DNA of 64,000 bases from Entomortierella parvispora E1425 (lineage: Eukaryota; Fungi; Mortierellomycota), in assembly GCA_020891255.1 (NCBI GenBank), contig BQFW01000015.1, forward strand, positions 992,001 through 1,056,000. Direction: 5' to 3'. Shown in pieces: positions 20,653 to 57,000 of the stretch. The translations under genes were made by a program, and so were the position numbers. The notes below the pieces were generated by a model. That model ran no database searches. It was not told the DNA's origin and worked only from the letters and a program-made list of their open reading frames with translations. Position 1 is the stretch's first letter; each line of letters starts with the position of its first letter.

Positions 20653-22386
20653 TCACTCCTCGTCCCCCGACGTTCGTCCATAGACGCACTGCAGAAGCAC
20701 AGCGGTAGCTTCTTCAGTACCCTTGAGTTGAAGCAGACGCGTAAATTGTGAAGGTATTTCGTCAAGAGTTAGCTTCGTGTCCGCCAGTTTCCCTATTTCA
20801 CGGATAGAAATGATGATGTGAGCGAAGAACAACCACCAAGAGCAAAATGAATCATCATAAATTATCACTAACATTTTTGGTGCATGCGAGGAAGGAGTTG
20901 GATTCGAGGCGCCACTCGACCTTCCTTCGTTACATGGATGACCCACTGCAGAATTAGCTCAGGACTTGACATCCTAAAAAAAGGTTGGGTAACAAATGAC
21001 AAAATTAGTTAATGCTCGACATGGACAATTATCAGTCAGAAATCGTCATTGACATACCTTGGTCCACAAAATACAAGAGTTTGGACTCCGGGACCACCAG
21101 GTAAGGTCTCCAAGGAAGGAAGGCGACTCCTGATGGACTTTGCTCCTCTTCCAGCTCCTGTGGACTTTGGTGAGTGATTTGATTTGACAAGTTCAGGGAA
21201 TCGCTTCGCCAGGTTATTAATAAGGTTGGATCTATCTCGGTCCATCTGGGCATATTGTGAGAGAGTCTGAAAGAAGAGTAGAAGCTGCGAGTTCCTCTCG
21301 GTTCTAAATGCAGGCAGAGCCCATAAGCTTGTTAGAGCAGGTCTACGGCAGTTTTATAATAAACAATTTTGCAACAATATGTCCAAACGAACCTTGAAAC
21401 AAGATGAGAAAGCTCCGCACGAGACCCCCTAGGAACAGTGACGCGGACCTTGGCAAGTTCAAGACTTGGCTCCTCAACATTGAAATGTACATCAAACTCA
21501 AGATGGAAGCATGACCCAGTCATCTGATACTCTCGTACACGCACACCTGTTTCTGAAGTTGACACTATCCGGTTGTGAATGGAGGTGAATGTTACGTTTG
21601 TGAAATCCTGAAGTCGACGGATCTATTAAAAAAAACCAGTAAATGTCTGTAATTGGCCAATATTCCGTATTTACTGGACAGACCTCTGCCGTGAACATGG
21701 ACTTACAGCTTCTATGTTCACAGTGGAAAGGGTCGGTGCTGACATGGATCCAAGTAGAGTTTTCGAGAAGGGCACTTCAGTAGTTGATGTTTTGTCCTTC
21801 TTAGTTTCCGATAAAGTCATGCTGTTTATGCTTCCAAGTACGGTTCTATCGAATGAATAGAACATGTTAGCACCTTTTCAAGTCCCTTGTTTCGTATGGC
21901 ACAGGCAATTAATTCTAACCTCATTTCCACGGCCTCCGTCTCCTGAATTCTCTGATGTCTTTCTATGGCAGCTGCGACAGCTCTAGCTCGCTTCCTCTTG
22001 GCTGCTTGAAGTCTACTCTCCAGTCGGTCAACCTCGGAGGTCATGTTGCGAAGTTGTTCCAAGATAACACTCTTCTGGATATGGAGATCGTCTGCATCGT
22101 CCATGCGTGAGCCAGTGGACATGGGGTCATCGCCATGAGAATGAGAGTTGTTGGTAGAAGACACCATGCTGGCGAAGGTCGAGTTGGGATGAGAGCGCAC
22201 GCCTGGACTCTCGGATGCAGCGAGCGCATCAGCAACTCCCGCCCGTGAGACTGAGGTGCTTGGCAGGTCCCACGACGAACCAAAGGGTGAGAATGATCCA
22301 ATGTTCACTGTTGGGGTAATGTCCCTGCCATAGATGGGTGCCAGCGACGTATTCCGTGTTGGGGTCCTTGCTCGGTCGTTTTCCAT
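20653..22386 (-). CDS. CENPP: CENP-P/Ctf19-like inner kinetochore protein; about 6 exons
   Basis: N-terminal coiled coil (LEQLRNMTSEVDRLESRLQAAK); LLLFFQTLSQYAQMDRDRSNLINNLAKRFPELV; ELILQWVIHVTKEGRVAPRIQLLPR; LDEIPSQFTRLLQLKGTEEATAVLL. These resemble recalled human CENP-P segments (FMFFRSL...LKEKYP; ELVIVWRIQIDEDGKVFPKLDLL; FRTLVGLLGIEAALESLI). Confidence 0.7.
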
Positions 22387-22790
22387 GCGGGATGTTCCTG
22401 TCGATTGGCGGGCTGCGATGATGTGAAAGATGAACGCGTCGAGCAGGACCAACCCATCACTCCCATCGCGTTTGTTTGCTTCTCGGTTGCCAGTCACTCC
22501 TTTTTTTTTTGGTTCCCAATCCCGCGTCGATCGGAATCAAATAAATTGGACCTCAATACAGTACTCTCTCCTCCCTTATCCCTCCTGGATCCAGCTCTTC
22601 CACTCTGCCAGTTAAGCCCCGCGCCTCTACAGCCCATGTCCAGGTGCCAAACTTGAATGACCCCAACCATGTGTCTCCGTCTCTCACTTTTGCTTTCTCT
22701 TTCTCTTCACTGCTACATGGCCCCTTCTCCTCCTTCGTCGCTCTTTAAATGTCCTCCCTTCCACCTGCTCCTTTCTCTCTGAAAGCTGGT

Positions 22791-24041
22791 ATGTCCGGTT
22801 TGAGCCCCAGAATTGTCTTGAGTGTCGTGGCATCTCTCCTGTTTCTACTGGCCGCAAGCTCTGTCAACGCAGCATCGCCCTCGCCTTCGCCTTTGACTAG
22901 AGAGCAAGTCTACGCGCAAGCAGGGATGGCCCAGAACTGGGTAGCCCCAATGCCATCCACTTCTCTCCAAGCGGCCGGAAGTGGGATGTCTGGAGAAGGG
23001 GAAAAATTCTTGGTTCAAAACTGGGCTACAACTTTTCACCAGATCCAGATTGGAGGAAATGATATCTCATTCACTGGTGATCCATTTGCAAATGCGCCTA
23101 CAGCCACAGTCGCGTCGTCTCCGGGAGCATCGAGTGCAGGGAGTGTTGGTGTCGGCAATTCAACGACTTCTCCAACACAACCACAGCAGCAACAAGTTTT
23201 AAAGTTGGACTACCCAAGGGGGTCCTATGCTCCTTCCATAGGGCCTATCCCCGGGGGTACTCATTTTTATGCAAAACCTTTTGGAGACAAGACCCCATTT
23301 GAATCCATGATGGTCAGCTACGATGTCGCGTTTCCCAATGGCTTCAATTGGGTCCTGGGGGGCAAGCTTCCTGGTGTTTATGGCGGTACGCCGTACGATG
23401 GTTGCTCTGGAGGAGTCCAGTCCACTGGGGCCAATTGCTTGACGATGAGGCTGATGTGGCGACCTAGCGGGTCGGGAGAAGGTAAGAGCACTCTATAAGA
23501 CTAGACTGCATGGAGAAAGACAAGTTTTCCTTAATCAAAAATATCATCTCTTATTCTAGTGTATGCGTACGTCCCTGCAGATCCAAAGTCCAACTTTTGC
23601 AAGAACTCGGCTGTAATTTGCAATGATCAGTATGGTAAATCGATCGGTAGAGGTCAGATCTATTTCCAAGCTGGAAATTGGACAAGAATGGACATGATCA
23701 TGTCTCTAAATAAGCCAGCCGGAAACAGCAACGGTACTCTGCAGGTGTATCGAAACGGTGCTTTGGTAATTCACCTGGACGATATCCCTTACAGAACCTC
23801 AGGGATGGTTGGCTTCCAGGGTCTTATGTTTTCTTCCTTCTTTGGAGGTTCGGACTCGACCTATGCCTCCCCAGTTGACACCTCCGTCTATTTTCGGAAT
23901 GTCCAATTGAGCGTTGGTCAGCCGGCTGCACTATACCAGGGCACTGGGGGAAGCATCGCCGCTGGTGATTTCAGCAGGCTGAAGGGTGGGACTATCGTTG
24001 CTATCGTAGTTTCTTTAGTATCATATCTCGTGTGGGTATAA
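22791..24041 (+). CDS. Secreted, probably GPI-anchored polysaccharide lyase family 14 (2 exons)
   Basis: Signal peptide; LKLDYPRGS; GGKLPGVYGG; CSGG; RLMWR...GE|VYAYVP; SIGRG; FQGLMFSSFFGGSD; terminal hydrophobic tail TIVAIVVSLVSYLVWV. An alternative upstream ATG lies at 22749. Confidence 0.85.
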
Positions 24042-46693: not shown

Positions 46694-49600
46694 TATGTTT
46701 TCCCAACAGCACCAGCACCAGCAATTCCAGCAACAGCAGCAACAGCAGCAACACTTGCTTCTCCAACAGATGCAGCAGAAACATTTTCAGCAACAGCAGC
46801 AATTAATGCAGCAACGCGCGGCCATGAAGAATCCGACTCCATTGCAGCAGCAACAGCTTCATATGCAGCAGCTTCAACTCCAGCAGCAACAGCATATGTT
46901 GCAACAACAGCAACAGCAGCAACAGCAGCAGATGCATCATCCCATGATGGCAGCCCATCAGCCACATTTGATGCCGTTGTCGACTCAGCCTGGACTTCAA
47001 ATGCACCCTCAGCAGATGTCTTTGCCAATGCAGCAGCAACAACAGATGCAAAACAGCCTAGCGCTCCAGCAACAACAACAACAACAGCAAAGGATGCTCT
47101 CACAAATGCAGAAGCAGCAGCAACTCCATCTTGCACACAGTGGCAAGTCTATTCCGAACGGTCTTCCTAGTCTGCCTGTAGCAGGCGTTCGTCCTCCTCC
47201 AGGCGTCGTTAATGGTTCTACACCCCCACCACCCCCACCGGCAATAGCGACCAAACCGATTGAGATTGACATCGATGAACAGGTCGTCCATGCTGTAAGT
47301 TCCTAATACGCAACGTTTACCTCCCACTCTCAATTTTTGATCTAATATTGGCCTTCTTTTTGAACCTTTGCTACAGTTACTGGAGCTGAACAAGGAGTTG
47401 ATCTGCGTGTGCATGGACTACCAGAACAGCGGGCTTACGTCCGATCCAGAATTCTTAAGGTAAGTGGGATGATAGAGACGGCGGTGGTCTTGACCTTTGA
47501 TAAAAAAACCAACATCGAGCTTTCTTATATCATACAGATACCAGGCACGTTTGCAGTCGACACTTTCGTATCTCGCGACTTGGTCTGAAGCCAAAAATAC
47601 ACAGGTTCGTTATGGATAGTAATAGAATTCGCGAAAATGCAGAAACAGGGAGGACTGATGCGTCAAATCGCTGTTTAATAGCTCACCAAGGCTCCGCCTA
47701 AACCAGACTTGTCACCGCTGCCTCCAGCACGCTTCCCTTCCGGTGCGCGAGCCATGCTGGCGCTTCCAAAAGTGGCTATTGCGTTCGCTCGTGCTCAAGC
47801 AGCCATAGCCTCAAAGCAATCTAAAACACCCGCTCCTTCGAGCGGCAATGATGACAAGTCTGTTAATGGAGCATCGCCGGCGATACCCGCAGTCGCGCCT
47901 GCAGCTCCTGCTGCACCTGTAGTAAGTCCTGCTGCACCTGTGGCAAGTCCGGCGGCAACAATCGCTGGATCAGTTCCCAGCACATCGGCGGCGCCAGTAT
48001 CGCCTATCACGGCGGCTGTTACGGCAGGAATGACAGCAGCATCAGTGTCTCCAGTGACTCAAGTGGCGCCTATTATCGGAAGTCAGACAGGCGGGACCCC
48101 ACCGCAAAGGTTCCCTGCAAATATGACCCTTCAGCAGCAACAGTGGATGCACCAGCAACGACTGCAGCAACAAATGCAGCAGGCAAGGCAAATGCACCCA
48201 TCCTCTCCGCAGCCAGCACAGTCTGGCTCCGCCTTCACACCTGCTCCTTCCTCATTACCGGCTCCTATACCCCAGTCTGCACCTCAATCTCAACCTCAGT
48301 CTCAGCCTCAGTCTCAATCTCAATCTCCTGCCCAGCCTGCCGCGGACCCCAGCACTGTGTCCGCAAGCACTAAAGCTGCACCAGCGACCTCTATGACGCC
48401 GCCATCGAGCCAGACAGTAGACTCATCTCCAATATCGACTTCGTTCCCAGTGGCGTCAGTAGGGAGTCTAGGACAGGCCATTGTCCAAACGGCGGGTACC
48501 AGTGGTTCATCTGTAACACCCATGAGCAATAGTTCAACTCAGGGACGGCAAGGTGGTGTTACCAGTGCCACCAATAGTCCTGCGTTGTCGCAAGCACAGG
48601 TTCCTGCATCGCCCATCACTGCCCTTCCACCTGGGTCTCCAGCTCAATCACAGGTACCTCAGCAGCCCCCTTTCCAGTCACAGCAAGTACAGAGTCTACA
48701 GCAAAAAGGACCAGGTAGTCGACATAATTCTCCACAAGTGTCGCATCAGATGCTTCCCCATCGGAATCCTGGATCTGCGACATCCTCACCAAACGTTTCT
48801 CATGCAACAGTGCCCGCTGCGCCCGCAGGGGGCGGGCCTGTCATGGCGGGATCTTTTAACCTTGGATCCCCAGTCACTGGAACTCCTGCCGGCTTTGCTC
48901 CATCCTTCCAGTCGCAGGCGGCCAGTCCAACCACTATGCAGCCCAAAGTAATGGGGTCTTCCTTGCCGATACAAATGATGCAGATGCCTATGTCCATGCC
49001 GATGTCCATGCCTCTACAAATGTCTGGTATGCCAATGGCAATGCCAATGCAGGTTCCGTTGTCAGGGAAGCATATGCTTGGAGGTGGAGCCCACGGTGTC
49101 CAGATGCAGCTGGGACCACATCAGCAGCATCAGATGAACCAGTTGCAGCTTCATATGATGCAGCAGCATCACCATCAACAGCAGTTCCAGCAACAGCAGC
49201 AACAACAGCAGCAACAACAACAACAACAACAACAGCAACAACAACAACAACACCAGCATCAGCATCAGCAACAGCAACAACAATGGCAACAACAGCAGCA
49301 GCAGCAACAGCAGCAGGCGCAGCAAATGATGCTTCAACAGAACAAACAGCATTTGCAGCAGCAACTCCAACAGAGACCCAGCAGCAGGCAGAATAGCCCC
49401 ATGATGAGTCCTGGACGAACTAACTCAGCCATGTTCAGTCCTCCCCCAGGACAATCTGCAGTATCCAATCTTTCCAACCAAAGCAGAGGCCCAAGTCGTG
49501 CAGGTTCGATGGACGCGGGAGTTGGTGCTGGAGCTAGCGGCACTATGATGACAATGAACACTATCCAACATGGATCGCCAGCATTGCATTCTTCTCGCCT

Positions 49601-50132
49601 TAGTCTCAACTCTGGAGGACCCGGATCAAGATCTGGATCTGTTGATTTGGACCGTCAACAACAACAGCTCGCGCAATCACATCAGCAGAATCTGTCATCG
49701 CCCTCATCGTTCCAGCAACCGTCGCCGGCATTATCGGCGCCAGGTACTGGCGAGCCTGCTAGCAGTTCTGATCCAAGTGATCTTAATGGAAGCAACAGCG
49801 CTAACAATGGAAACGATGATGACAATGACATGGTCAACATGGGTATGGGACTGGAGCTTGATATGGATATGAGTATGAGCATGGACCACCATTCTACACA
49901 GGATGAGATGCCTCAACAGCACTCGTCATCGTCATCAACCCCATACGGAAATAGTGAAGGATATGGTCAGTCTGAAAACAACAGTAGTAGTAACAAGGCC
50001 AGCAACGGTGATAGGGAGGATGATCAGGATTCTAATCGAAATCACCAAGGACTGAGCAATTTAGAGTTGGATAGTATGATCTCTACAGGAGAAGACGACG
50101 ACGACCTCATGAGCGGGTTCCTCAACCTTTAA
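46602..50132 (+). CDS. SSXT-domain (SS18/GIF/Snf11-like) polyQ protein; 4 exons, start uncertain
   Basis: Spliced VVHA|LLELNKELICVCMDYQNSGLTSDPEFL|RYQARLQSTLSYLATWSE matches the recalled SSXT pattern (N..LI..I...QN.G......YQ..L..NL.YLA), flanked by long Q/P/S-rich regions. Confidence 0.72.
49160..49320 (+). repeat. Mixed CAG/CAA/CAT polyQ(H) tract
   Basis: About 50 nearly consecutive Gln/His codons. Similar tracts occur near 8300-8470, 15450-16430, 31830-31870 and 46600-47100. Confidence 0.85.
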
Positions 50133-50620: not shown

Positions 50621-53131
50621 ATGGCGCGACTCAGAGGAGAGGGTGCACAAGACTGGCTGAATCAGCAGCTGACATCACCCTGGCATGGACATCAGACCGT
50701 AGCCTCTGGTTTGAGCAACGAGATCATTCTCAACATTCGAGAGCGGTGGTCGCAACTGGAAAGCAGTGTTCGCCTCGGAGTCCTGTTTTCTCTAATCAGT
50801 CTCAAGAAAGCACAGCAGGTCGAGCTCAGGGACAGATGTCAAGAGGTTTGTAGTTTTTCCTTTGGAGGCTACTCGGCTGCATCAGGAGAGGGCGTAAATT
50901 CTAATGCCCTTTTTTCACTTTTTGCATAGCTGATCGACCATGCCTGTTCGGACCCAGACGATTGGGTACGACTTGTGTCCCAGATGTTGAAGGATTATCC
51001 GAGCGAAGGAACCCTTCGATTCAACGTGGAACAATTTGCAGACCAAGCCCAGCTTGGGTCACTATTAAAAAGCTTGACGGATCATAGTAATATTCATTTT
51101 CTTGGATTCTGGCGTTTAGTATATGCGGTGGTCGAGATTGGGCTATGGTCACTGATTCACTTTTTTATTATTACATCCGAATAGTTTCCCAAAACGGCAT
51201 CAAATTTCACCCAAAAGAGTTTGCATATCTGAGCGAATCTGTTTGCAAAGCTGGCCAGGGACGCGATCCAAAAACAAAAAAATACCCGGCCATGACAGGA
51301 CCCTCACTGCAGACCCACTTTACTCTCATCGACGACAGTGACGAATCCATACATGGAGATCGGTCTGAGCGACTCAGGAAGATGGCGGATCAGGCTTCTC
51401 CTGCGGTCACTCTGCCTGGAGGAATACTTAGCAGCAGCAGCGCCAGTCTTGGGAGCGTATTGGACAGCAGTGTTGGTCCAGGCAGCAACGATGGAACATC
51501 CAGTGCGGAGGGTGGAAATAGCGCAAGCGGAGGAACAGCTGCAGGAGCTGGCTCCGTACAGGCTATTGGATCAAATGGATCACTTGCACCCGGAGTAGCG
51601 GCCACAACGGGACCAGGGGCAACAGCGCCAGGTGGATCAGGCACGGCACCTGGATTAGGAGGAAATGTTGCACTTGGTCCTGGAGGTGTACCTGCAAGGC
51701 CCGTCAAGAGCTCCGGACTCTTTGTAAAGTCAAAACCTTCAGGGACATCCTTCCTGCGGAACAATGCCCCCAGACCTATGCCACTCCCAAGGAGTAAGTA
51801 TCAAGATGCCTCTACCACTTGTAATTGTTGTAATGTATTACTTATTTATTTATTTTTTTTTTTTTTTTTGTAGATCCATCGCTTGGCCAGATTCCTACAA
51901 TTGCGGCGTCTCGTGGAAATCCAAAGGTTTCTCGAATTCAAATTCTGGATTTGCAGCAAGGGAATGAGATCATGCAATCCATGAATGATGCCAGAATCCG
52001 GAAAGAGCAAGGTGAGAAATTCTTGTATCTTTTGTATATTGAAGACAACCAACTATCAATGTCCTGGTCCCTGACTCTGGCTTTCGCCTTGTAGACGAGA
52101 AACGGGAAAAAGAACTGAAGAAGGAACAAAGATTACAGGAAATAGAGTTGAAAAAGCAACAGGATGCAGACAAGAAGGCTCAACTACTTCGAGAAAAGGA
52201 AGAAAAGAAAAAAGAGCGAGAAGACGCTAAGCGGGCGAAGGAGAAGGCAAAACAAGAAAGGGAAGAACAAGCAGCAGCCGCTTTGGCAGAGCGGGAACGG
52301 GAACGGGAACGGGAACGATTGGAGCAGGAGCGTTTACGTGAGCAGCAATCCCAAGCTGGAGAGATCCATGTGCTGGATGATGATGATCCCAACGAAGCAT
52401 CATTGTCCTCTGTGCCTGCCCGAAAGAAGTCGCGCCTTCATTCGTCTGATTCTAGACGAGGATCGCGTGACGGTGAGGATGACGATGACTATGATGGTAT
52501 CGACAATCCCAGCAGTAGCAATGGTCGCCCTGAACCCATCAACACTGGACAACGGGATTATGCATCAAATGCTATGAGTCCTACCACACCAGGATTGACG
52601 TCCACATATGCCCGCCAGAGTTTGTACGATACAGAACCTGCAGGGCAACAGACTCCAGGCCGCCAGGCTTCAAATGCCCCTACCGACTCTTACTTCCAAC
52701 ATCAGCATCAATACCAAAGCGAAGTGGTTCCTGGACAATCTCTGCAGTCACCATCCTCCGTGGTGGCCGAGCACCCCACTTTGTTTCAGGACACAAACCT
52801 TTTGCGACCAGAAGATCGGCAATATATTTCTCTATTCTTACAAGGACATCCAGGTAAGCATGTTGTTTTGTTGCTGTGGCTGCCTATCTTTCAATATCGT
52901 CAGAACCTAACCGAAGATCTACCTTCCTCTGTACCAGTGGTTCGTCCAAATGAAAACGCAACAACGACCCAGATCGTGATGAATCAGGAGCAAGTCCAAG
53001 ACGCAAATGGCAAGATTATGTACGAGCTCATTGTCATTGAAATGAACTTTGAGACTGGAGAGTGGAGAAAGATCAAACGCAGAAGACAAAAGCCTCATCA
53101 ACCAGACTTTTCTGCATCCAATGGCTCATAA
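50621..53131 (+). CDS. NELFA: Negative elongation factor A (NELF-A/WHSC2) homologue; 6 exons
   Basis: DWLNQQLTSPW...VASGLSNEIILNIRERWSQLESSVRLGVLFSLISL; E|LIDHACSDPDDWVRLVSQMLKDYPSEGTLRFNVE; FHPKEFAYL; C-terminal PEDRQYISLFLQG...QIVMNQE...IVIEMNFETGEWRKIKR. Both termini resemble recalled human NELF-A (WLHNKL...VIDNIR...VKLKLLL; DSDPWVLMVADILKSFPDTGSLNL; LPLECQYL; EKALILGFMAG...VFEMNYATGQWTRFKK). Confidence 0.85.
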
Positions 53132-54092: not shown

Positions 54093-57000
54093 TTACAGGT
54101 TCGAGTCTCTTCTAATACGGACGAGGTTTTCAACCCGCTTTTTGAAAAAAAGAACATAGGGTGTGTCAGCCGCACGACTTTTGGCTGCCTGTTCAACAGC
54201 CTCAAAGCTTGAAAGGGTTACACTCGTGTCATTGTATAACAACCACTGTCCATCCTGGTCTCCGCTTGTCGTCTTCTTGAAATCACATTCCTCTCCTTTT
54301 GATAATTCTACAAGAGAGGAAGAATGGGTGGTGCCGCTTGCTTTGATGTTGCTCGAGAGTTTGTCTTGGGAAGAGTTGTCTCTTGCGTATGTATAGTAGT
54401 GGCCGTGGTTGGCCGAATCGCCGGTATGGACTACAACCGCAAAGAGATCATACTGTATCTTGGAGAGCACTGGTGGCTGCCGGTCTTGAAACGTCGAACC
54501 AGAAGTCTCAAGCTGAATAGATTTCGAGAGTTGAATCTACACGCGACAGGCCGTTCATAAAGTGTATAAGAGACATTGTAGTTCACGGAACAGCTTGAGG
54601 AGGGCTATTAGTGTACCTACCGGCGTATTAATCTTGACGCGTCGCGACCTCTTGACATCAAACTCAAATCGATTCAAGGAAATAATGAGGTTCGTCGGCA
54701 AGGATCCAAGAGTTGTGCGCTTTTTTTTTAATCAAAAATAAATGATATAGGTGAAAAAAAAGAAAAGAAATGTTAGCATTGGTAGGATGGTACAACCTCC
54801 TTGACCAGCAGACGCGTGTCTGCGAAAAAAAAAAAAGCAAGCAGGTATCTATCCTACCCGTGTCGCGGACTGAAGGGACTTGCATTGGTCACAGAAGTAA
54901 GGATTCGAGTTTGCTTCGTTTAGTTCCTCAGTCGAAGGGTATATGTCGACTAGCCTCTGCAGATCTGCAGTAGTATCTATTTCCACAAACGTAATTGTAA
55001 GTAGAATGAAACATCCAACATCCCCTCTAACGATTACCGGTACCGTGCACGAAGAAGTGACCCATAGTCTCAACATCATATCATCGACAGCAAAGTTCTT
55101 TACCTGCATGAGGAATAGGAACTGCAAGGTCATAAAAGTTCTCCGTGTTCGAAGATAAGGTCCCACAGTTTCCGCACTGGATCTGATTGACAACTGTTCC
55201 ATGAAAGGACGACAGGGCCTTTTTTGAAGCCGGATCCTCATCCTCCAGTCGACTGAATAGGATTCTAGTTCAAAAAAGATAATACAGGTGAGAAACCAGC
55301 TGTTCACAACGCCACGCGTAGTATCTCTTTCTCCAAAAGAATGAGGACTTGAAATAGATGAAAAAAAGAGAGCGGAGTGAGGGGTTGTTCGACTTACTTT
55401 ATAAATTCAGCCGCGTCCTGCTGATGTCCATCGTTGAGCCATTCAGGGAGGGCTTTGTATAGCGCCGATGGGGTAAATATTGTCAAGCGTGAGGTCGACA
55501 AACTGACAAATGTTTCTCTTAATTTTGTTGTCATAACCTTGGACGGATCCACTCTAAAATGCGTGATTTTTTTTGTTTGTTTTGTGTGTACAGGGTATGA
55601 GCTAGAGTTCATACAGTTGCCATACCAGTATCAGCATCAGTTACTGACAACGATGGCCATGATGCTACACTTGACGTACCTGAGCGTCCCACCTAGGATC
55701 GCTTGCTTGAATTCTTCTGAGCAGAACAAGGCTCTCAAGGCACTGTTCATAAAGCACGAGTTTCCCAAGTTGACCAATCCGACTTTACCCAGGGGCTGAA
55801 CAAGCACCGCCCTGCGACGTGTTCCTGCACTTGTGTCTGTTGAAAGAAACGAAAGAAAATACCATGAGTCCTAACAAACAAAAGTAGCAGATCATACCCA
55901 AATATAGAGACCACACGGGACGGATCAGATATCGTCTGCACCTTACTTTGAATTTGAAGTCCTTTCTTCCAAGATGATTCCTGCATCGTCCGAATTGCCT
56001 CTGCTCTAGGTACAATCGGCTAGAAGGATGGTCAGAGCCTACTCTGTTGAACATATTCGAAATAACGCTTTCAAAACAAAGCATTAGCCTCAAAATATTT
56101 ACCAAGTCGAGAAAAACTCTCGCTTTTTGCACCTTGGTCCCCACATCGTCCGTGTCTCCAAAATGTATGACCAAAATCTGAGCCAAATTACAGACCTCAG
56201 TTGCAAATGCAGCATCCTCCTATTGTAAAAAAAAAGAAAAGAAAAGAGAAGCCGGGGGTCAGTTCTCTCATCAGACTCAACGCTCGGGAACAATAGGCTA
56301 TCTTGCACTTACGGGACCCTTGCGGCAATTGACAAGCAAAGGTATGAGACCTTTGGCCACGTTGTGAAAGAGAATCGGTGACTGGTGATAACCAAGAAGC
56401 ATGAATCGAAGGACCATAAAGGCGTCGTTTCTTCTGGCGCGAAATGCAAGCTGCCGAGCAACTAGAAAGTAATCAACGAGATAAAACATATAAGCAAAGA
56501 GTCCAGCTTCCTGGCGTTTCCAAAGAGCAAAAAAAAAAAAAAAAAAAAGGAAAGGCCAAAACATACTTTTGTATACGTTCTCTGTTGCCAAATCTCGAAG
56601 GAGTGCAAATTCTCCTCGAGAAGCCAAACTCTCCGTAATCGCCACAATCCAGACACCTATAACAACAGATGGTCAAGAAAAGTCCGCTTTAAGAATCAGC
56701 CTAAAGCATGTAAGTAGAGGTTACTCGAAAATGGATCCCACTTTACCGATTCCAGGGAGGTCGTAAGTTACAAGCCAGTCGATCAATCTCTGAACTGTAA
56801 ACCTCAATCGCCAGAGGTGCAAAGCGTCTATATTCTGGACAAACGGATCCACCACTATTCAAGCAACAGAAAATAGCCAGTATGTGTCTGAGGGTTGTAT
56901 CGCGTGGAGCCACACACATAGTTTTGATTGGTATTAGTAGAACGTCTTGTTACCTGAAGTGAACGATTCTGGCACCACTTGCAATAGGTAGCCTACACCC

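Follow-up and report, generated by a model that had tools for sequence, protein, structure and literature searches.

NELF-A is a subunit of the complex that pauses RNA polymerase II (Pol II) in animals, and the textbook view is that fungi are without NELF, as the two model yeasts lack it. A six-exon gene of the fungus Entomortierella parvispora E1425 raises the question whether a soil fungus encodes a true NELF-A, and what such a protein would do there. The gene lies on the forward strand at positions 50621-53131 of the window, by which we mean the whole 64,000-nucleotide stretch of contig BQFW01000015.1 that was analyzed. We conclude, with a probability of roughly 0.85, that it encodes a true NELF-A orthologue that, as we infer, belongs to a NELF core on Pol II-DSIF and has its C-terminal domain on Integrator. 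The homology is full-length, follows the human order and comprises four parts: a helical N-terminal domain (residues about 1-198), short conserved linear motifs (residues 299-325 and 347-365), a long charged helix with low-complexity linkers that constitutes the 'tentacle', and a small helix-plus-sheet C-terminal domain (residues 605-680).

The reading frame starts with the ATG at 50621 and ends with the TAA at 53129-53131, and its coding length is 2082 bases (693 codons plus TAA). All six exons are on the plus strand. Exon 1 (50621..50845; residues 1-75) encodes the start of the N-terminal domain, exon 2 (50930..51086; residues 76-127 and the first base of codon 128) encodes its middle part, and exon 3 (51185..51793; residues 128-331) contains its end at residue 198 (window position 51396), followed by a G/S/A-rich linker (51397-51696; residues 199-298) and a conserved short motif (51697-51777; residues 299-325). 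The KVSRIQILD motif (51921-51977; residues 347-365) is located in exon 4 (51874..52011; residues 331-377), in which the long charged helix also begins. Exon 5 (52095..52853; residues 377-630) comprises the K/E/R-rich helix, which ends at residue 465 (52360), a Ser/Asp-rich linker (52361-52777) and, from 52778 onward, the first part of the C-terminal domain. The three-stranded sheet of this domain is encoded by exon 6 (52938..53131; residues 630-693 and the stop), with the sequence EMNFETGEW at 53039-53065 (residues 664-672). The five introns are all of the GT-AG type and measure 84, 98, 80, 83 and 84 nt.

The E. parvispora GenBank protein EMPS_10985 (P0028, 693 aa) agreed with all six exons and with the four split junction codons. 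Exons 1-5 were identical to its residues 1-75, 76-127, 129-330, 332-376 and 378-629, the split codons gave I128, N331, D377 and V630 as in the public protein, and exon 6 agreed with its tail. The exons were searched singly, and the whole-protein analyses were performed on the public entry. GenBank labels EMPS_10985 a 'hypothetical protein', which would suit a gene in decay or a mistaken gene model, in either case devoid of function; the intact reading frame and its five canonical introns argue against such an origin, to which we return with the conservation data.

Intron 5 (52854..52937, plus strand, 84 nt) is in frame and free of stop codons, and an open reading frame at 52148-53131 runs straight through it. 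Its acceptor was placed at 52937 because in every orthologue V/M-x-R-P comes immediately after GHP; splicing to this acceptor yields ...GHP/VVRPN..., the same junction as in all orthologues. A 63-nt intron with its acceptor at 52916 was ruled out, as the orthologues and the public protein back the 84-nt form. The AG at 52915-16 is likewise frame-keeping and would add 7 residues, and retention of the complete intron would add 28 residues inside the C-terminal domain. Alternative splicing of intron 5 is possible. Just upstream of the gene, the window contains an 807-codon open frame (47709-50132, plus strand) that is extremely Q/P/S/A-rich, has long poly-Q runs and gave no Pfam match. Downstream, an exon of a ubiquitin carboxyl-terminal hydrolase is located on the minus strand at 54093-54470 (Pfam UCH, 45 bits).

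A preliminary description of the locus had proposed that it encodes a homologue of NELF-A in which the two conserved ends of the animal protein are present, and profile searches bore this out. EMPS_10985 matched the Pfam family NELF-A_N (PF23553) over residues 24-143 with 49.2 bits (E 7e-13), above the curated cut-off of 27 bits, and in a six-frame scan of the 38.9 Mb genome the present gene was the sole NELF-A_N locus, its exon pieces summing to 38-39 bits. Exon 1 contributed 20.1 bits (profile positions 18-62) and exon 2 contributed 19.7 bits (profile positions 72-108). Searched alone against the PDB with phmmer, exon 2 matched human NELF-A chains 5l3x_A and 6gml_U (residues 80-115, E 0.007). 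Single-sequence PDB searches with exons 1, 3, 4 and 6 and with the exon 5-6 read-through gave no NELF-A match, and exon 4 alone had no match whatever in the PDB. A profile built from an alignment of 18 fungal orthologues (A1; 16 from Mortierellaceae and 2 from Basidiobolus) retrieved 6gml_U (human NELF-A, E 8e-27), 8uha_U (4e-25) and 5l3x_A (5e-14) from the PDB, and the next match had an E of 0.007.

The same assignment was obtained by structure comparison. When the AlphaFold2 model was compared with the PDB by Foldseek, ranks 1-5 were all NELF-A chains with probabilities of 0.95-0.99, and rank 6 had a probability of 0.38. The NELF-A matches were modest in themselves (E 2e-3 to 1e-2; TM by target 0.33-0.39), and the low TM scores are expected because the N-terminal domain wraps around NELF-C in the crystal. 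The assignment to the NELF-A family is secure. Over the N-terminal domain the Foldseek matches had 24-27% identity to human NELF-A, and this distance counts against the notion that the gene is animal sequence that arrived by contamination or recent transfer. Nothing beyond the animal-type family name speaks for such an arrival; the short fungal-type introns, the 2.8 Mb contig on which the gene sits and the orthologues throughout the family all speak against it, nothing human-looking was found within the window, and we consider this origin hardly conceivable.

Alignment of the A1 profile to human NELF-A resulted in three pieces whose order was the same as in the human protein. The N-terminal piece covered human residues 12-207 with 59.1 bits. 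The middle piece (human residues 218-290) was weak at 1.1 bits and brought fungal SRIQILD onto human GVKLLDI; this weak in-order alignment places the exon 4 motif on human RGVKLLDI, at about residues 252-259. The C-terminal piece covered human residues 377-522 with 35.8 bits (i-Evalue 3.5e-8) and aligned fungal ...IEMNFETGEWRKIKR to human ...FEMNYATGQWTRFKK. Within it, fungal EMNFETGEW was aligned to human EMNYATGQW, in agreement with the C-terminal EMNxxTGxW domain recognized earlier. Both the N-terminal and the C-terminal end of the fungal protein are homologous to animal NELF-A. Human residues from about 189 to 248, following the N-terminal domain, are what we take to be the Pol II-binding, HDAg-like stretch. 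This stretch is barely alignable to the fungal protein, as the significant alignment stops at human residue 207 and the next piece is the one of 1.1 bits.

The G/S-rich and charged linker that had been described between the two ends was readily recovered in the composition of the protein. Residues 199-298 consist of 26% G, 18% S and 16% A, residues 366-465 of 24% E, 17% K and 15% R, and residues 466-604 are rich in Ser and Asp. Conservation followed the same boundaries. In Mortierellaceae and Basidiobolus, respectively, identity was 70% and 33% in the N-terminal domain (residues 1-198), 71% and 41% in the motif at residues 299-325, 79% and 42% in the RIQILD motif (residues 347-365), and 72% and 45% in the C-terminal domain (residues 605-680). 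These four ordered blocks range from 70 to 79% in Mortierellaceae and from 33 to 45% in Basidiobolus, and the linkers from 17 to 30% and from 6 to 8%: the G/S/A-rich linker (residues 199-298) showed 17% and 6%, and the Ser/Asp linker (residues 466-604) showed 30% and 8%. The E/K/R helix (residues 366-465) had 53% and 25%. R351, I352, Q353, L355 and D356 were invariant among the 18 fungal orthologues, as were E664, M665, N666 and W672 in the fungal sequences of A1. In both of these very distant fungal lineages the blocks are conserved and the linkers between them drift freely, a pattern that indicates purifying selection on a tethered-domain protein.

The AlphaFold2 model computed from A1 showed a helical N-terminal domain, a single long helix at residues 357-464 (pLDDT about 80-90) and a small C-terminal domain made of a helix (residues 615-625) and three strands (pLDDT 75-88). 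The pLDDT was below 50 over more than half of the model, and a reader inclined to regard the gene as a functionless relic could point to this figure as well as to the GenBank label. The block-wise conservation does not fit a relic, and more than 30 orthologues in Mortierellaceae and Basidiobolus, found by a word search, share the pattern of conserved blocks and free linkers that purifying selection leaves; decay or a faulty gene model is therefore very improbable. The ∼100-residue charged helix of the model may act as a stiff spacer. In the ESM Atlas, the C-terminal part alone retrieved three animal NELF-A clusters when searched by features, and the C-terminal domain matched an arthropod NELF-A cluster when searched by structure (TM 0.72, residues 599-684). 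A fold search of the PDB with this domain gave no significant match (best Z 3.4), which fits a domain without a solved structure.

Human NELF-A (WHSC2; PDB 6gml chain U and 5l3x chain A) has its parts in the same order as the fungal protein, and the two have in common an N-terminal helical domain, an R-x-x-x-L-D motif, a long flexible tail and the C-terminal EMNxxTGxW. They share about 25% identity and differ in length (693 aa in the fungus vs 528 aa in human); the fungal protein has the ∼100-residue E/K/R helix and the G/S/A linker, whereas the human charged stretch at that place is much shorter. Closer relatives are similar throughout. Two Basidiobolus proteins (P0037 and P0038) aligned end to end with E. 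parvispora NELF-A at 34-36% identity and had the same four blocks. Four GenBank entries named 'Negative elongation factor A', from Mortierella sp. AM989, Mortierella sp. GBA35, Lobosporangium transversale and Modicella reniformis, are direct orthologues with the same architecture, 59-61% column identity in A1 and 52-54% identity by BLASTP, and differ from EMPS_10985 only in their label. A word search combined with alignment returned Mortierellaceae and one animal-like sequence only, and charged low-complexity words filled its candidate list. An 883-aa protein from a Logan assembly (P0041) is an animal-like NELF-A; the fungal profile gave its N-terminal domain 70 bits, and the gene model lacks the EMN motif at its end and is probably truncated.

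The occurrence of NELF-A in fungi is already known from databases and from one published survey, as the preliminary description had allowed in calling presence alone not wholly new. The UniRef name of EMPS_10985 is 'NELF-A N-terminal domain-containing protein', and the survey's NELF-A alignment takes in two fungi, Rhizophagus irregularis and Basidiobolus meristosporus (Chivu et al., bioRxiv 10.1101/2023.02.19.529146, Fig. S6). NELF had earlier been noted in Dictyostelium and as missing from the two yeasts (Chang et al. 2012, PMC3371697). The survey reports a broad eukaryotic distribution for NELF-B and NELF-C/D and "Apparent homologs of NELF-A" in some unicellular eukaryotes; it restricts the HDAg-like domain to animals plus Capsaspora and NELF-E to animals alone, and it does not discuss the C-terminal domain of NELF-A (Chivu et al., bioRxiv 10.1101/2023.02.19.529146). 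No Mortierella sequence is part of the survey, the name having 0 occurrences in its 144 supplementary files (bioRxiv 10.1101/2023.02.19.529146). Our literature search returned no paper joining NELF with Mortierella or with early-diverging fungi, and no transcription data for this lineage.

The genome was then searched for genes of the proteins with which a NELF-A would work. For NELF-B, the Pfam family COBRA1 matched three in-order exons on the minus strand of contig 3 (684354-685287; 51, 32 and 27 bits). For NELF-C/D, contig 6 has seven exons (2343914-2346276) that matched the Pfam family TH1 in order and together span profile positions 31-551 of 579. Both genes look intact. NELF-E, a subunit characterized by an N-terminus that binds NELF-B, RD repeats and an RRM, does not have a dedicated Pfam model, and the features sought were RD/RE repeats upstream of an RRM. 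There were 105 genomic RRM matches; 40 single-RRM loci were screened and at least 10 further loci lay outside the screen, which flagged two genes. The first is U2AF65-like (contig 6, about 2026560-2028900, minus strand), with an unusually long RD-repeat head and three RRMs. The second (contig 5, about 22100-23430, plus strand) encodes a poly-Q/P head and a long GYDR run followed by a split RRM; this RRM resembles generic RRMs and is unlike that of NELF-E. The full NELF complex suggested at the outset thus stood for NELF-A, NELF-B (COBRA1) and NELF-C/D (TH1), and NELF-E was neither found nor excluded by the 40 RRM loci.

To our knowledge, Integrator and NELF are both absent from the model yeasts. 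In E. parvispora, a gene for the Integrator subunit INTS2 was found on the plus strand of contig 7 (505980-509226; Pfam INTS2, best exon 127 bits), and the profiles INTS5_C and INTS1_RPB2-bd gave no match in the genome. HEXIM and 7SK regulate pause release in animals. Searches of the whole genome with the HEXIM family and with 7SK RNA gave no match, a result that cannot prove absence; should neither in fact exist in this genome, the fungus would lack the mechanism by which animals restrain P-TEFb.

By analogy with human structures and biochemistry, the N-terminal domain would pair with the NELF-C/D encoded on contig 6 and, together with the NELF-B encoded on contig 3, would form a NELF core on early elongating Pol II-DSIF that slows elongation. 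The ∼100-residue E/K/R helix would serve as a stiff spacer keeping the C-terminal domain away from this core, and the tethered domain would contact Integrator in the manner of its human counterpart. The tip of the human NELF-A tentacle is a small ordered domain (residues 431-528) that binds the INTS12 PHD finger; when R453 is mutated, binding is weaker and the effect resembles a loss of NELF (Blears et al., July 2026, bioRxiv 10.64898/2026.06.30.735463). Human, Xenopus and Drosophila are the only species for which conservation of this domain was displayed (Blears et al., bioRxiv 10.64898/2026.06.30.735463). The fungal domain resembles the human one in being a small ordered domain of homologous sequence at the far end of the tentacle; INTS12 binding was demonstrated for the human domain only, the fungal one being known from its sequence and predicted fold.

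The fungal protein has no arginine at the position of human R453. In a gapless alignment anchored by F624 on F462 and G627 on G465, R453 falls on P615, and the orthologues have A, Q, T, P, M, K, R, G or E in this column. R614, one position before P615, occurs in this species only. D617-R618 is invariant in fungi and aligned to human E455-K456, which places R618 three residues past P615. A contact of the C-terminal domain with a fungal Integrator is plausible but unproven, because the domain is homologous yet the key residue is not kept.

Animal-like pausing by such a complex is a separate matter and, for E. parvispora, a possibility rather than an observation. A true NELF-A orthologue could also act without a focused pause, in a more general checkpoint with Integrator on early elongation or termination, or in RNA 3'-end processing, as an ancestral role predating animal pausing; we give this a little less than an even chance. 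The variable state of the R453 position fits such a role, as do the INTS2 gene, the lack of a HEXIM or 7SK match in the genome and the unsettled state of NELF-E among the screened RRM loci. It is also consistent with the survey, in which unicellular species had only a dispersed 'proto-pause' and NELF-A and NELF-E were seen as later additions (Chivu et al., bioRxiv 10.1101/2023.02.19.529146). Counting against the NELF core proposed above, the survey found that NELF-B and NELF-C/D alone went with only a weaker pause, with pausing indices above those of NELF-less species (Chivu et al., bioRxiv 10.1101/2023.02.19.529146). Against the ancestral role stands the retention of the whole animal layout, C-terminal domain included, across very distant fungi, which argues that the contacts are the same as in animals. 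The assignment of the gene as a NELF-A orthologue is common to both possibilities.

What is new is modest: an end-to-end fungal orthologue that includes the C-terminal domain just given a function in human cells, and a genome that also has NELF-B, NELF-C/D and INTS2 and in which HEXIM and 7SK had no match. The survey assigns the functionally important parts of NELF-A to a time close to the origin of animals (Chivu et al., bioRxiv 10.1101/2023.02.19.529146); conservation of the C-terminal domain in fungi moves the origin of this domain further back and suggests a simple system for experiments. This soil fungus has retained the entire length of NELF-A, together with NELF-B, NELF-C/D and one or more Integrator subunits. 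We tentatively propose, as a possibility falling clearly short of even odds, that Mortierellaceae, and probably other early-diverging fungi, may have a functional NELF-Integrator checkpoint that acts early in Pol II elongation and in which a NELF-A of complete animal layout docks on Integrator through its C-terminal domain. If this is true, the full NELF-A architecture would date to the common ancestor of fungi and animals and not to a time near the origin of animals, and a growable, transformable fungus would become available as a model for pausing.
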